Below, piece after piece: positions 22,861 to 31,443 of a stretch of DNA of 64,000 nt. Source of the DNA: Macrostomum lignano (taxonomy: Eukaryota). The stretch is taken from NCBI GenBank assembly GCA_002269645.1, contig NIVC01000568.1:1-64000 (forward strand), written 5' to 3'. Position 1 is the first letter of the stretch. Each line of letters opens with the position of its first letter. The notes beneath the pieces are model-generated. The model saw only the letters and a program-made list of their open reading frames with translations. It did no database searches and was not told the origin of the DNA. A program made the position numbers and the translations under genes.

Positions 22861-24149
22861 CCGAAAATTCCTCAGAGAGCCGAAGTATATTGCAATAAAG
22901 GCCAGCCACACGATGCAGGTGGAGTACATGGTGAATGCTATGTACTTCGCCTCGTTGAAGTTCTCCGGAATGTTTCTAGTCTTGAATGCGTACAGGGTGC
23001 ACAGGACAATAAGAATCATGTTGTACAGCAGAGAGACAACGATAGCCACGTCATCAACAGCGCAGCGCAGCACTTTGTGATCTCTGTCGGGATAGTCAAA
23101 CTTGGTTTTCGGCAGGTCCATGCCTAGCCAAGTCATGTCGCCGATGACTTGCACAGACACAAGGCAGCAGCAGAGCACCAACTGGGATTTTGGGCTGGTG
23201 TACGAGGGCTTCTTCATCAGCGATTTTATTCCACGATTGAAAATTCGACTGAGCCGATTGGTCTTGGTGAAGATTGCTGAGTAGATTATGCTCAAACTGA
23301 GACCGTTGAAGATTCTAAAAAACCCGCAGGTGACAGGACTTGGCGGCGCCAGCATGATGAAGGTCATGCAGTAAGACAGCAGGATTCCAGCCAGCATCAC
23401 GTAGCAGAGCTCTCGTCCGGAGGCTCGAATAAGCGGTGTCTGATTGTACTTCACAAATACGAATAGCACGAAAGCGGTGCAGAGCAGGCCCAGGAAGCTG
23501 AAGGACATCGGCAACAGGGCCCATACACTGTTCAGTTGGATTGTCTCAATTGGCAGTGGCTCGCATGAGTTGAAGTACCGGTTCGGAATGCTTCCAAGTG
23601 GACAGTCGGAGCAGGTGGTGGAGTTGAGAACGATTTGGTACTTGCTATCGCAACTGACGCACTCCCAGCAGCAAGCGGCAGCCTCTTTGTTGGGCGCCAC
23701 CGTTCTCTTGCCATAATCGCAAGGCTCCGAGCAGACGGAGCGAGGTGTCTCTTCACCCGGCGTGCCCCAGCGCAAGCTGCTATTGTCCAACTCCAAACGG
23801 TCGTCCCCCCAGGTGCCGATTTTGTAGTAGCGGAAGGACTGATTTCCGCCCGACTCCGCAGAGTTGACTCGCTGCAGCTGGAAGATCTCGTAGAGGGACT
23901 CGCGATCGCCGTGACGATTGAAGCGCACAAGGTTGCCGGAGGTTCCATTGAAGCTAATGTTGCGGATTAGATCGCGAAGCTGAGTGCCATTCAGCTTGCG
24001 ATCGCCCGTCACCTTTCGACAGGCAGATGGGGGTCCATTGCCGCAGAGCAGCCGGTGCAGGGAGTGGGCCATGGCGTAGACTGCGTCCACCACCATGGGC
24101 ACGAGACCCTCCTGCTCGTACTTGGCGGTTACGCCGATTCTCTCGTCTC
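22861..24149 (-). CDS. mGluR: mGluR exon 5 (end of flytrap, cysteine-rich domain, TM1-TM6)
   Basis: VDAVYAMAH, SVCSEPC, CCWEC, RASGRELCY, KTNR, NFNEAKYIAFTMYSTCIVWLAF; 1289 nt, phase 1-0. Confidence 0.97.
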
Positions 24150-24260
24150 CTGGACGGGATTGTGTAAGTGGACGTTTGGATTCAATTAACAGTAGAACCT
24201 GAAAGCTGGCAAGATTGCATATAAATGATGTTCTTGATCAATAAAATTATCATCCTAAAA

Positions 24261-24482
24261 GTCACCTGTATTGGTTCGTTACTCTCGACCACGTAAAGAT
24301 ATTGCACTGAAACCTCACACAAACTTGATAGCATAACATATTTCAGCTAAAAACACCGATCACCGTGAGCACAGTTGCATAATTTCGAAGGCACTTATGC
24401 AGCGACTGTCTGTTTAATGTTTTTGTGAGTTTTCAGTGCAATAACAATACCTGGTCGAGAGTTACAAACAAATACAGATTAC
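24261..24482. mobile_element. Small MITE-like inverted-repeat element
   Basis: actctcgacc..attgcactgaaa is mirrored by tttcagtgcaat..ggtcgagagt. Confidence 0.6.
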
Positions 24483-25189
24483 TTTTGGGATGACCTTCGT
24501 ACACAGAGAGTAATTAGAAAATTCTCTTCCATGTTCACTAGTTATTAGACACGATGAAATTTCATCGGTTAGAGCTAGACTGGAAGATGATTAGGTTGCT
24601 CTCTGTCGAAGTCAGTGCCTGTCAGCTGAGCTTTGGTGACAGGTTACAATAGATTAATGTCAAGCCGTTGAAAGGATGGTAGTGGTTGCTCCAGTTGGTT
24701 GCTTGGAGACGCTCGAGTTCCTAATCTGCAGACTTCTTGCAGAATCCTTTCCCGCTAGAGAAATCCGCATTCGAATCGGGTTGCTGGGCCGTCCCATCCT
24801 CCGCCAGCGTCACGCAGTCTGGCGGAAGACTAAGGCGAATTTGGGTGGCGCAAGTTGCGTGTAAATTAATCCCCCTAAACCATTCCCTCGCGTCTCTTTC
24901 CCCGCAATCCCAATTTTCATCCCCAGAATCGCGTTTTTTCCCTCCTGCTCCGACTGATCCCACCCGACCGAACCAGCGAAGCTCTTCTTTCTCTCACGAA
25001 GTCTCCACATCGTTTCCAACTCGTCAGTTAGGGAAGAGGATTAGCAAAAGGGATTAGATTGCCGGTGTGAAAGAGATAGAGATGAAAATGATTAGCAAAG
25101 CGGCTGTTCTAATGTTTCAGAATTCACCGAAACAATCATCCGGATGAAGGCAGCTGAAGAGATGCTCAGCAAAAGAAGATTTCACCTAC

Positions 25190-28614: not shown

Positions 28615-29350
28615 TATCTATTTACCTACCTACCTACCTACCTACCTACCTACCTACCTACCTACCTACCTACCTACCTATCTATCTATTGGCTATCTAT
28701 CTCTCTATCTATCTATCTATCTATCTATCTATCTATCTATCTATCTATCTATCTATCTATCTATCTATCTATCTATCTATCTATCTATCTATCTATCTAT
28801 CTATCTATCTATCTATCTATCTATCTATCTATCTGTCTATCTATCTATCTATCTATCTATCTATCTATCTATCTATCTATCTATCTATCTATCTGTCTAT
28901 CTATCTATCTATTTATCTATCTATCTATCTATCTATCTATCTATCTATCTATCTATCTATCTATCTATCTATCTATCTATCTATCTATCTATCTATCTAT
29001 CTATCTATCTATCTATCTATCTATCTATCTATCTATCTATCTATCTATCTATCTATCTATCTATCTATCTATCTATCTATCTATCTATCTATCTATCTAT
29101 CTATCTATCTATCTATCTATCTATCTGTCTATCTATCTATCTATTTATCTATCTATCTATCTATCTATCTATCTATCTGTCTATCTATCTATCTATCTAT
29201 CTATCTATCTATCTATCTATCTATCTATCTATCTATCTGTCTATCTATCTATCTATCTATCTATCTATCTATCTATCTATCTATCTATCTATCTATCTAT
29301 CTATCTATCTATCTATCTATCTATCTATCTATCTATCTATCCATCTATCT
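28615..29350. repeat. Compound tetranucleotide microsatellite (CTAC)n-(CTAT)n
   Basis: Direct inspection; lies in mGluR intron 1. Confidence 0.98.
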
Positions 29351-30969
29351 ATGCCAGTGCATGCAGCATTAGACCCACCTCATAGGTAAGTGAAACTTCT
29401 CAACCAATCAATTCCTTCTGTCTTAGTGGTGCTTTCATTGATTTCTGTCCCGAATGAGCGGGAGGGTTGACCGAAGGCTCTTTGATGTCATGCGGGCCAC
29501 CAATCCCGTGATTTAATGGCCTGGTTGCGGTAATTTATTCCCTTCAACCGCTTGTCCTGCCGGTGACTTTGCTCTTCGAATTGATTTCGACATTCTGAGT
29601 TGGTCTGCGCCCAGATCATTGGCTACTGCCATCATATCCCGCATATGATTGAGTGCGGCACCGAGGGGAATGGAATAGCAACTGATAATCAATACTTGGC
29701 GACCCAACCCGACCCTGCGGGCGCCGTGCCTCTCCTTGCAATTGAATTCGCAGATTGAGCTTGGCAACAAAGGTGGTCAATAAAAGTGCATATTGAGTAC
29801 AGCTATTGCAATAGAAGGCTGTTGAGCAGATGGCGGGGGGATAAATATAAGAGGGGAGAAATTGAGGCAGAAAGAAAATCTCTAAGGCAATTATACTGGA
29901 CTAGTGAAGAATGGGATACTGTAGGCTTTATTCTACGTACTAAGGAACCTCTGGCTGGCTCGAATTTAACTTACAGCAGTTATCTGGCGTCCATCTATTG
30001 GTCTTTAAATCGAAACAGCATCCTCACAAAGCTTACAAAATCGAGGAAAGGAGAAGAAAAAGAAATTTCTGAACGGCGGCGCTTGCTGGCTGTTGCTAGA
30101 AGACAACAATAAGGTACTTAATGCATGCACAAAGGCCTTGAATCTCTTTCTCCGCTGCTGTGTTGCGGATGCTGAAAAACGCTAAAGTAGTTGGAGGCAG
30201 ATAGAGAGACAGGGAGGGAGGGCGGAAAGAATCCCACACTTTAACGATCAGGAATTCTAGATAGAGAAACAGACTAAGAAAGAGAAGCCACCGCGAGAGA
30301 AGAGAGACGGGGTAGGAGGGAGAGATAGCCATAGCGATGCAACAATGCAGCACAATGGCAGCGAAACTTAGCTGGCTTGGAGAGTATGGAGAGAGCGCGG
30401 CTTGGAGAGGCTGCTGAGGAGGTGGGAGATTCCGCGGCCACGGCATCCGCGGGTCCGGAGAGCGGTATTTGCTGAGCGTGATGTGCTTAGAAAAAATTGT
30501 ATCCATTGTAAAAAACCTGACTCATTTGAGACTGCCTAAAGTTCAACGGGCTCTTCTTCGGAGACGAGGAATGCCTTACCGACAGAGGCCGACGATCTGC
30601 AAGTTCGGGCTGGGTAATCAACTTGTTCCCAAACATATCTGGAAAAGCTTGATTCGAAGGCAGGGTTGCGTGAGCAACGCATTCGGCGACGTCGTCCCAT
30701 AACCAGTGCTGGGGCAATTCTGCTCATTGCGCAGACTCCTGAGCACATGCAAGTTCGTCAATACTGTACTCAGGCGCGCACTCATGCACACGCTCACACA
30801 GGGTGTACAGCGGCCCTGACTTTCTAATCGTCAGGCATGTACACTCTCTGAGCCTTGGGGCACGTGAGGATGAACCCCACGAACACCACGAACCTCAAAT
30901 TAATGTGGCGCTCGAATATCGAATCGAAACCCAAGAGTCGTGGCGTTAGGGTCAGACACGTGGGCTCAC

Positions 30970-31443
30970 CTTGAATAGTCGCAAAATATTGGCAATCATG
31001 ATGCTGACTGAGGAATCGGCGGCGCCGATCACTCCAGCGACTGGCTTGCGCGACTTTCGCTTAGGCGTCCTGGCGGCAGGGTCGGGGCACTGGTACTCGT
31101 ACGACGCGTCTAGCGTGCTCAAATGATCCGTGACGAAGTCCATGCTCTGTTCAAGCGCGTAGGTGTCCTTGGAGCAGGTGTCAAGCAGCTTGGCCCCCAG
31201 CTTCAGATGCGGCAGGAGACTGGGATCTGCGTTGACGCGATTCAATGCATAGACCATGGCCTCCAGGCGCTGGATGCCTCGGTTCTCGCTGATCTTGCCG
31301 CACCTGCTGGTCTCGGCCGGGTCCTTCTCGTGGATGGGGAACAGGCCGCCAAGAATCAGTTCGCCGGGAAGTGACATCTTTTTGCAGAGGCCGATCGGTG
31401 AGGCAGCCGAAACAAGTAGCAGGGTCAGGATTAGCGCTGCCAT
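30970..31443 (-). CDS. mGluR: mGluR-like class C GPCR exon 1 (signal peptide and start of Venus flytrap domain)
   Basis: MAALILTLLLVSAASP signal peptide; LGGLFPIH, RGIQRLEAM, LDTCS, SVSIMIANILRLFK motifs; GTGAGC donor, phase 0. Confidence 0.95.

Follow-up and report, generated by a model that had tools for sequence, protein, structure and literature searches.

A class III-type metabotropic glutamate receptor gene of Macrostomum lignano with leucine at the position of a glutamate-contacting lysine

Introduction

Does the absence of a glutamate-contacting lysine from a metabotropic glutamate receptor (mGluR) mean that the receptor has ceased to recognize glutamate? The question is raised by a gene on the minus strand of contig NIVC01000568.1 of the flatworm Macrostomum lignano (GenBank assembly GCA_002269645.1), of which positions 1 to 64,000 were analysed; this whole stretch of 64,000 nucleotides is referred to as the window. 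A preliminary description, made from the sequence letters, had recognized here an mGluR-like receptor with an intact alpha-amino-acid-binding site, in which a conserved lysine (Lys409 of mGlu1, Lys405 of mGlu4) is replaced by leucine and an additional aspartate stands in the ligand-binding region. From these features it had concluded that the ligand pocket is rewired and that the agonist, following the precedent of the insect receptor DmXR (mangetout), may be an amino acid with a neutral or basic side chain. The analysis described below confirms the observation but supports the interpretation only in part: the gene is assigned by sequence comparison to class III (mGluR4/6/7/8-type), the leucine appears to be an ancestral state, and glutamate or an acidic amino acid related to it probably remains the agonist.

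Results

The locus is an intact M. lignano class III-type receptor gene, for which uncharacterised predictions already exist in UniProt. Six minus-strand coding exons separated by canonical GT-AG introns give one uninterrupted open reading frame (ORF) of 955 codons with no internal stop, and all five exon junctions are found in two UniProt M. lignano proteins, namely P0001, which is 100% identical to the gene model over 81% of the query, and P0002, which represents the same gene with a frameshifted stretch inside exon 3 (25832-26119). The span of 24090-31060 originally given for the receptor lies inside the gene but covers only part of it, the confirmed coding exons extending from 31443 to 22282 and the coding region probably ending at 21699. 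At this 3' end, an exon within 21699-22036 is likely to be either an alternative or the true last exon; the C-terminus that it would encode ends in VRETAL, as does that of the paralog P0004, and the -ETAL ending resembles a PDZ-ligand motif. The UniProt models are themselves flawed, P0001 taking in about 100 residues from intron 1 (about 28096-28569).

That the gene encodes an mGluR-like receptor is borne out by Pfam and database matches far above chance, the last reaching an expectation value (E) of 0. The order of the Pfam domains fits a class C G protein-coupled receptor: ANF_receptor (residues 59-475, E = 2e-80), NCD3G (residues 516-570, with a score of 40.4 bits against a cut-off of 38.9) and 7tm_3 (residues 586-836, E = 5e-68). 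One chain combines a Venus-flytrap ligand-binding domain, a nine-cysteine domain and a class C seven-transmembrane (7TM) bundle, the combination expected of the family. The closest solved proteins by sequence (HMMER) are mGluR7, then mGluR4, 6 and 8, followed by mGluR2/3 and then mGluR1/5. An AlphaFold2 model of the extracellular region, used for confidence values and fold matches only, has a predicted local distance difference test (pLDDT) score of 86.9 and a predicted template-modelling (pTM) score of 0.86, and its top Foldseek matches are all mGluRs, with mGluR6 and agonist-bound mGluR8 as the best (TM 0.83, 2.7 Å).

All of the motifs quoted in the preliminary description lie in one minus-strand frame across the GT-AG introns (IQRLEAM at residues 57-63, ADSSVS at 142-147, YASTS at 164-168, YGE at 215-217, SDGWG at 295-299 and YEQEGLVPM at 392-400), and the alpha-amino-acid-binding residues are intact, as it had stated. 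Ser144, Thr167, Asp187, Tyr215 and Asp296 align with Ser165, Thr188, Asp208, Tyr236 and Asp318 of mGlu1, the contacts of the alpha-carboxylate and alpha-amino groups, in columns that are invariant or nearly so across 48-204 sequences, which makes an agonist of the amino-acid type very likely. The replacement of lysine by leucine is equally real, HMMER placing Leu397 (codon CTC) opposite the Lys of YEQEGKVQF in mGluR7, in agreement with MAFFT. The additional aspartate, Asp143 (codon GAT), stands opposite the Gly of GASGSSVS in mGluR7, at a position occupied by Gly, Ser, Tyr, Ala or Phe in other mGluRs; its column directly precedes the invariant Ser (Ser159 of mGlu4) both in the HMMER comparisons with solved mGluR7, 4, 6 and 8 and in the MAFFT alignment. 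Both codons stand exactly at the positions given for them in the preliminary description. The residue equivalences used here rest on alignments, in which the relevant motifs contain no gaps.

What distinguishes class IV (the DmXR/mangetout class) is that Arg78 and Lys409 are both replaced non-conservatively (Ramos-Vicente et al. 2018, PMC6307864), and the absence of the Lys409 equivalent, one of these two hallmarks, could be taken to indicate a class IV orphan receptor that does not bind glutamate. However, the Arg78 equivalent is retained as Arg59, in a column that is invariant Arg throughout class III. Pocket signatures were derived from a search of 1.84 billion representatives, with 134 receptor-sized matches aligned and flatworms represented by Macrostomum only. 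Read over the columns at model positions 55, 59, 143, 144, 166, 215, 269, 270, 296, 297, 300, 301 and 397, they are YRSSAYEGDGDRK for class I, RRYSSYR.DG.QK for class II, GASSSYSDDGARQ for class IV and RRDSSYQADGRKL for the Macrostomum clade. Representatives with the class IV signature, including P0215 of Drosophila mauritiana, which we take to be the mangetout ortholog, and P0217 (the cluster of bee 'mGluR B'), carry Ala and Gln in the Arg78 and Lys409 columns and form a separate clade. In a neighbour-joining tree (122 sequences, 730 columns, 100 bootstraps), the Macrostomum clade is monophyletic in 100/100 replicates and groups with lophotrochozoan class III in 74/100 and with lophotrochozoan plus arthropod class III in 91/100, but with the class IV core in 0/100. 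The comparison with the mGluR groups and mangetout-like receptors that had been proposed as a check thus places the gene in class III and never in class IV; on these signature and bootstrap tests we regard the class IV reading, which is hardly conceivable, as already refuted, and the DmXR/mangetout precedent as inapplicable. By sequence, then, the gene is a class III (mGluR4/6/7/8-type) ortholog.

Two related candidates were also set aside. An insect DmXR ortholog was ruled out, since the best matches are M. lignano proteins and the class IV signature and clade differ. The idea that the honeybee receptor AmGluRB, which is reported to bind glutamate, might be of the Leu type was dropped because 'metabotropic glutamate receptor B' sits in the class IV-signature cluster P0217. 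The parasitic flatworm species studied so far appear to be without class III (PMC3261222, PMC6114109, PMC9750798).

The state of the Lys409 column across taxa bears directly on the meaning of Leu397. Leu already occupies this column in 38 sequences, i.e., nearly all invertebrate matches, in a first alignment of the gene model with its 120 best matches. Among 204 class III-type sequences (the first matches together with those of a dipteran clade member), Leu occurs 108 times, Lys 92 times and Ala, Val and Ile once each. Lys is found in vertebrates, amphioxus and echinoderms, and Leu in arthropods, molluscs, an annelid, the flatworm and hemichordates (Val in one hemichordate), with other non-Lys residues in nematodes (Tyr), an acanthocephalan (Phe) and a nemertean (Ala). 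For example, Capitella CapteG198326, tabulated as the class III receptor mGluR4-8_Cte (PMC6307864), is the database match P0010 and carries Leu. The glutamate-contacting Lys is absent from every protostome and hemichordate class III ortholog sampled (proteins P0008-P0260), and it therefore marks the chordate and echinoderm members rather than the orthology group. On this distribution, Leu397 is inherited from the protostome class III ancestor and is no change specific to this receptor, so that the claim of a pocket rewired by the leucine no longer holds.

Apart from this column, the Leu-type pocket (KR.STY[N/D]EDSAK-L) matches the vertebrate group III pocket (KR.STYNEDS[S/A]K-K) at the remaining 12 of 13 positions. 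No compensating new Lys or Arg was found at a known pocket position in the Leu-type receptors, the gains lying elsewhere in the domain. The uniform loss of Lys in arthropods, molluscs, the annelid, the nemertean, nematodes, the acanthocephalan, the flatworm and hemichordates might suggest that the whole protostome and hemichordate class III clade uses a non-glutamate agonist or has a markedly different pharmacology, and a literature search gave no functional characterisation of any member. We consider such a clade-wide shift quite improbable, because the 12 other pocket positions have been conserved for more than 500 million years, which points to an unchanged ligand class, and because, among the key residues, mutation of Lys409 is reported to be the least damaging (PMC9750798). 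A literature search on mutagenesis of this Lys gave indirect statements only, among them that, of the key residues, it alone can be mutated without severe impairment of glutamate binding (PMC9750798, citing Sato 2003).

The eight best database matches of the gene are M. lignano proteins, and at least four paralog lineages are distinguished (the window gene, P0003/P0006, P0004/P0005 and P0007/P0024), with 62-72% identity. YEQEGLVPM is present in all four and GAADSSVS wherever the N-terminus is present. Although the paralogs are only 62-68% identical in the ligand-binding domain, against 80-91% in the 7TM region, they have the same pocket, RRDSTYQ[A/S]DGRKL. Being common to the paralog lineages, the pocket changes are therefore old and maintained in the genus, not a one-off mutation. 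The Macrostomum pocket differs from that of other protostome class III receptors by a conservative change of Lys to Arg at position 55, by Asp for Phe, Ser, Ala or Gly at 143, by Gln for Asp or Asn at 269, by Ala or Ser for Glu at 270, by Gly for Ser at 297, and by Arg for Ala at 300, a position that is basic in two mites as well. In a sample of about 200 class III-type sequences, an acidic residue at 143 is found in Macrostomum alone, where it is kept in the three full-length paralog lineages. A second lineage with Asp143 (P0256) was rejected as an alignment artefact from an N-terminally truncated, internally duplicated mollusc fragment. In the set that we take, from modelling and mutagenesis work, to form the group III distal pocket (Lys74, Asn286/Glu287, Ser313 and Lys317 in mGlu4 numbering), two of the four elements are kept, Lys74 as Arg55 and Lys317 as Lys301, while Asn286-Glu287 is replaced by Gln269-Ala270 and Ser313 by Gly297.

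Could these changes reflect decay? M. lignano has many duplicated genes, the receptor belongs to at least four paralog lineages, and its ligand-binding domain shows a fair degree of divergence (46-50% identity with other class III orthologs), as might be expected of a decaying duplicate in a recently duplicated genome with its pocket under relaxed constraint. This explanation is nevertheless very improbable in view of the uninterrupted 955-residue ORF over six canonically spliced exons, the completely intact alpha-amino-acid contacts and nine-cysteine domain, the high identity of the 7TM region and the identity of the pocket among paralogs, the confident AlphaFold2 model, and the existence of UniProt protein models of the gene.

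A change of agonist in the Macrostomum clade, with Leu397 together with Asp143, Ala270, Gly297 and Arg300 re-tuning the distal pocket for a neutral, basic or modified amino acid, carries more weight than decay, though we still consider it unlikely. It would account for the restriction of Asp143 to Macrostomum and its retention in three full-length paralog lineages, as well as for the loss of the conserved Glu270 and the replacement of Ser297 by Gly, and it has precedents in DmXR with L-canavanine (PMC2695807) and in class IV generally (PMC6307864); if true, the DmXR story would have an independent, flatworm-specific parallel inside class III. However, Leu397 is ancestral and not clade-specific, position 143 varies naturally (Phe, Ala, Ser, Gly, Asn, Tyr), and the pocket contains further basic residues, a finding that the preliminary description had itself named as telling against its view: Arg55, Arg59 and Lys301 are kept and Arg300 is added, giving a strongly basic pocket that disfavours a basic ligand. 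Nor are the Macrostomum-specific substitutions concentrated in the pocket. Conservation of at least 90% in the Leu-type outgroup is reached at 191 positions of the ligand-binding domain, and at 29 of these the three full-length paralogs carry a fixed difference. Of the 13 glutamate-contact positions of mGlu1, which we take to be those of the crystal structure of 2000, 11 pass the same 90% threshold and one of these is changed, so that no enrichment is detected (1/11 versus 28/180, Fisher p = 0.85) and the pocket appears to have changed no more than the remainder of a domain that is diverged overall. Moreover, flatworm receptors with far more divergent pockets answer to glutamate (PMC9750798). 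The suggestion of an agonist with a neutral or basic side chain is consequently left weak.

Table 1 Receptor gene, key codons and other features of the window (positions in the window; all codons and exons of the receptor are on the minus strand).
Feature	Position	Strand	Remarks
Coding exon 1	30970..31443	-	ATG 31443..31441; signal peptide and first part of Venus-flytrap ligand-binding domain; Arg55, Arg59, Cys119, Asp143, Ser144; donor GTGAGC
Exon 1-2 junction		-	ILRLFK/IPQISY, present in UniProt protein P0002
Arg55 to Arg59 codons	31267..31281	-	Arg55 in mGlu4 Lys74 column; Arg59 in Arg78 column, Arg lost in class IV
Asp143 codon GAT	31015..31017	-	Column of mGlu4 Gly158 / mGlu1 Ser164
(TATC)x185 array	28615..29352		Inside receptor intron 1
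Coding exon 2	26393..26609	-	YASTS motif (Thr167), Asp187, Tyr215; acceptor CACAG, donor GTGAGC
Exon 2-3 junction		-	SQQG/ICISG, present in P0001 and P0002
Coding exon 3	25832..26119	-	Gln269, Ala270, Asp296, Gly297, Arg300, Lys301
Gln269 and Ala270 codons	26001..26006	-	Asn or Asp, then Glu, in other class III; conserved acidic residue lost
Asp296, Gly297, Trp, Gly, Arg300, Lys301 codons	25908..25925	-	Asp296, alpha-amino contact; Lys301 in mGlu4 Lys317 column
Exon 3-4 junction		-	RRAVV/DFDNYF, present in P0001
Coding exon 4	25190..25354	-	Part of lobe 2 and hinge of ligand-binding domain
Exon 4-5 junction		-	KSCTG/DERIG, present in P0001 and P0002
Coding exon 5	22861..24149	-	End of ligand-binding domain with YEQEGLVPM, nine-cysteine domain, TM1 to most of TM7; Pfam NCD3G (residues 516-570) and 7tm_3 (586-836)
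Leu397 codon CTC	24103..24105	-	Column of mGlu4 Lys405 / mGlu7 Lys407 / mGlu1 Lys409
Exon 5-6 junction		-	LRNFR/IKLTSL, present in P0001 and P0002
Coding exon 6	22282..22716	-	End of TM7 and cytoplasmic tail; read-through stop TAA 22284..22282; alternative GT donor after 22326
Probable last coding exon	within 21699..22036	-	C-terminus ...NPNVRETAL, stop TAG 21701..21699; acceptor candidates 22036, 21994, 21904 and others
Shaker-type voltage-gated K+ channel	43460..45136	-	Single-exon ORF of 559 residues; BTB_2/T1 E = 9e-28, Ion_trans E = 7e-51
Ankyrin-repeat exons	4394..7644	-	Several exons, Pfam Ank E = 2e-28 to 3e-47; GC content 0.62; probably an ankyrin-family gene
Zinc-finger exon	61028..61645	-	Three C2H2 zinc fingers, EGR-like
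ORF near zinc-finger exon	62600..63199	-	No clear domain
21-bp minisatellite, first array	17525..18144
21-bp minisatellite, second array	36219..36457
Further repeat arrays	57681..60082; 54089..55547; 46484..47093; 38958..39486; 34536..35134; 10493..11107; 3142..3741

Besides the receptor gene, the window contains a channel ORF, ankyrin-repeat exons and a zinc-finger exon with a neighbouring ORF (Table 1), and it shows an unusual abundance of long micro- and minisatellite arrays (for example, 160 copies of a 15-base-pair (bp) unit and 48 copies of a 30-bp unit), many of which give long spurious ORFs. The two arrays of a 21-bp minisatellite flank the receptor gene in opposite orientations about 18 kb apart and are 88-90% complementary; the complementarity ends at the array edges, so they probably belong to a dispersed satellite family and do not form a mobile-element boundary.

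Discussion

The reading that we favour, and hold to be probable, is that the gene is a class III ortholog whose product continues to respond to glutamate or to an acidic amino acid related to it. Leu397 is ancestral and the distal pocket offers Arg55, Arg59, Lys301 and the new Arg300, which makes glutamate or another acidic agonist the most likely ligand. The acidic side chain newly introduced by Asp143 is offset by the loss of Glu270, and the pocket therefore remains basic, which would favour an acidic distal group and disfavour a basic ligand. In the predicted mechanism, the product of this intact, transcribed gene, one of at least four paralog lineages, would act like other class C amino-acid receptors: the dimeric Venus-flytrap domain would close on an alpha-amino acid held by Ser144, Thr167, Asp187, Tyr215 and Asp296, and the nine-cysteine domain would then relay the signal to the 7TM bundle, which would hand it on to a G protein. 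The residues particular to Macrostomum (Asp143, Gln269, Ala270 or Ser270, Gly297 and Arg300) probably tune potency or selectivity and not the class of ligand. We speculate that Asp143 may form a salt bridge to Arg300 or Arg55, or may influence the nearby anion site, which is known from group II and III receptors. In Schistosoma japonicum, SjGRM7 is reported to be glutamate-specific with six of seven key residues changed, and L-glutamate also activates its homolog Smp_128940 of S. mansoni (PMC9750798); the loss of pocket residues has thus already failed in flatworms as a predictor of the ligand.

Several points weigh against retention of glutamate sensing in a class III receptor. Class III as a whole is supported in only 61/100 replicates, in a tree that is neighbour-joining and hence distance-based. 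The Lys that is replaced contacts glutamate or other agonists in active group III receptors, as seen by cryo-electron microscopy (PMC13544217). Asp143 adds an acidic side chain beside the invariant Ser, and both this addition and the loss of the conserved Glu at 270 (to Ala or Ser) may change selectivity. Finally, the searchable literature yielded no functional study of any Leu-type class III ortholog, and the glutamate responsiveness of the protostome clade is therefore assumed.

The absence of the contact Lys from all sampled protostome and hemichordate class III receptors raises the wider question of whether invertebrate class III members are true glutamate receptors. M. lignano, a tractable flatworm with an expanded class III and a unique Asp in a ligand loop, is well suited to asking how far class C pockets can drift without a change of ligand. 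The case also illustrates that ligand prediction from single pocket residues needs a phylogenetic baseline.

The M. lignano receptor is worth comparing with related systems at increasing distance. The protostome and hemichordate class III receptors ('mGluR4-8', e.g., Capitella CapteG198326 and Apis GB44216) have the same Leu and the YEQEGLVP motif at 46-52% identity. They keep Lys, Arg, Ser/Ala/Phe, Ser, Thr, Asp, Tyr, Asn/Asp, Glu, Asp, Ser, Ala and Lys in the pocket, from which Macrostomum differs at positions 55, 143, 269, 270, 297 and 300, and in Macrostomum class III is also expanded to at least four paralog lineages. Vertebrate mGluR4, 6, 7 and 8 have the same ligand-binding, nine-cysteine and 7TM architecture (45% identity over 97% of the query) and share with the gene Ser144, Thr167, Asp187, Tyr215, Asp296, Arg59, Lys301 and a basic residue at the Lys74 position, whereas the gene has Leu for Lys (Lys405/Lys407), Asp for Gly/Ala at 143, Gln-Ala for Asn-Glu at 269-270, Gly for Ser at 297 and Arg for Ser/Ala at 300. 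The class IV receptors (DmXR/mangetout and bee mGluR-B) resemble the gene in belonging to class C, in their intact alpha-amino-acid contacts and in a non-Lys residue in the Lys409 column; unlike the gene, they have also lost Arg78, with Ala and Gln in the two columns of the representatives examined here, and make up a clade of their own. DmXR itself is insensitive to glutamate, its activator being L-canavanine (PMC2695807). SjGRM7, Smp_128940 and the planarian GSMD001419-type receptors are, like the gene product, flatworm receptors with a non-canonical glutamate pocket. In clear contrast to it, they belong to none of the classes I-IV, lie close to GABA-B and lack six of the seven key residues, whereas the present gene is a well-conserved class III member in which only one is lost. 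Set among these systems, the M. lignano receptor gene is, as far as its sequence tells, largely ordinary: its Leu substitution is a phylum-spanning ancestral trait, and Asp143 is left as a small lineage-specific curiosity.

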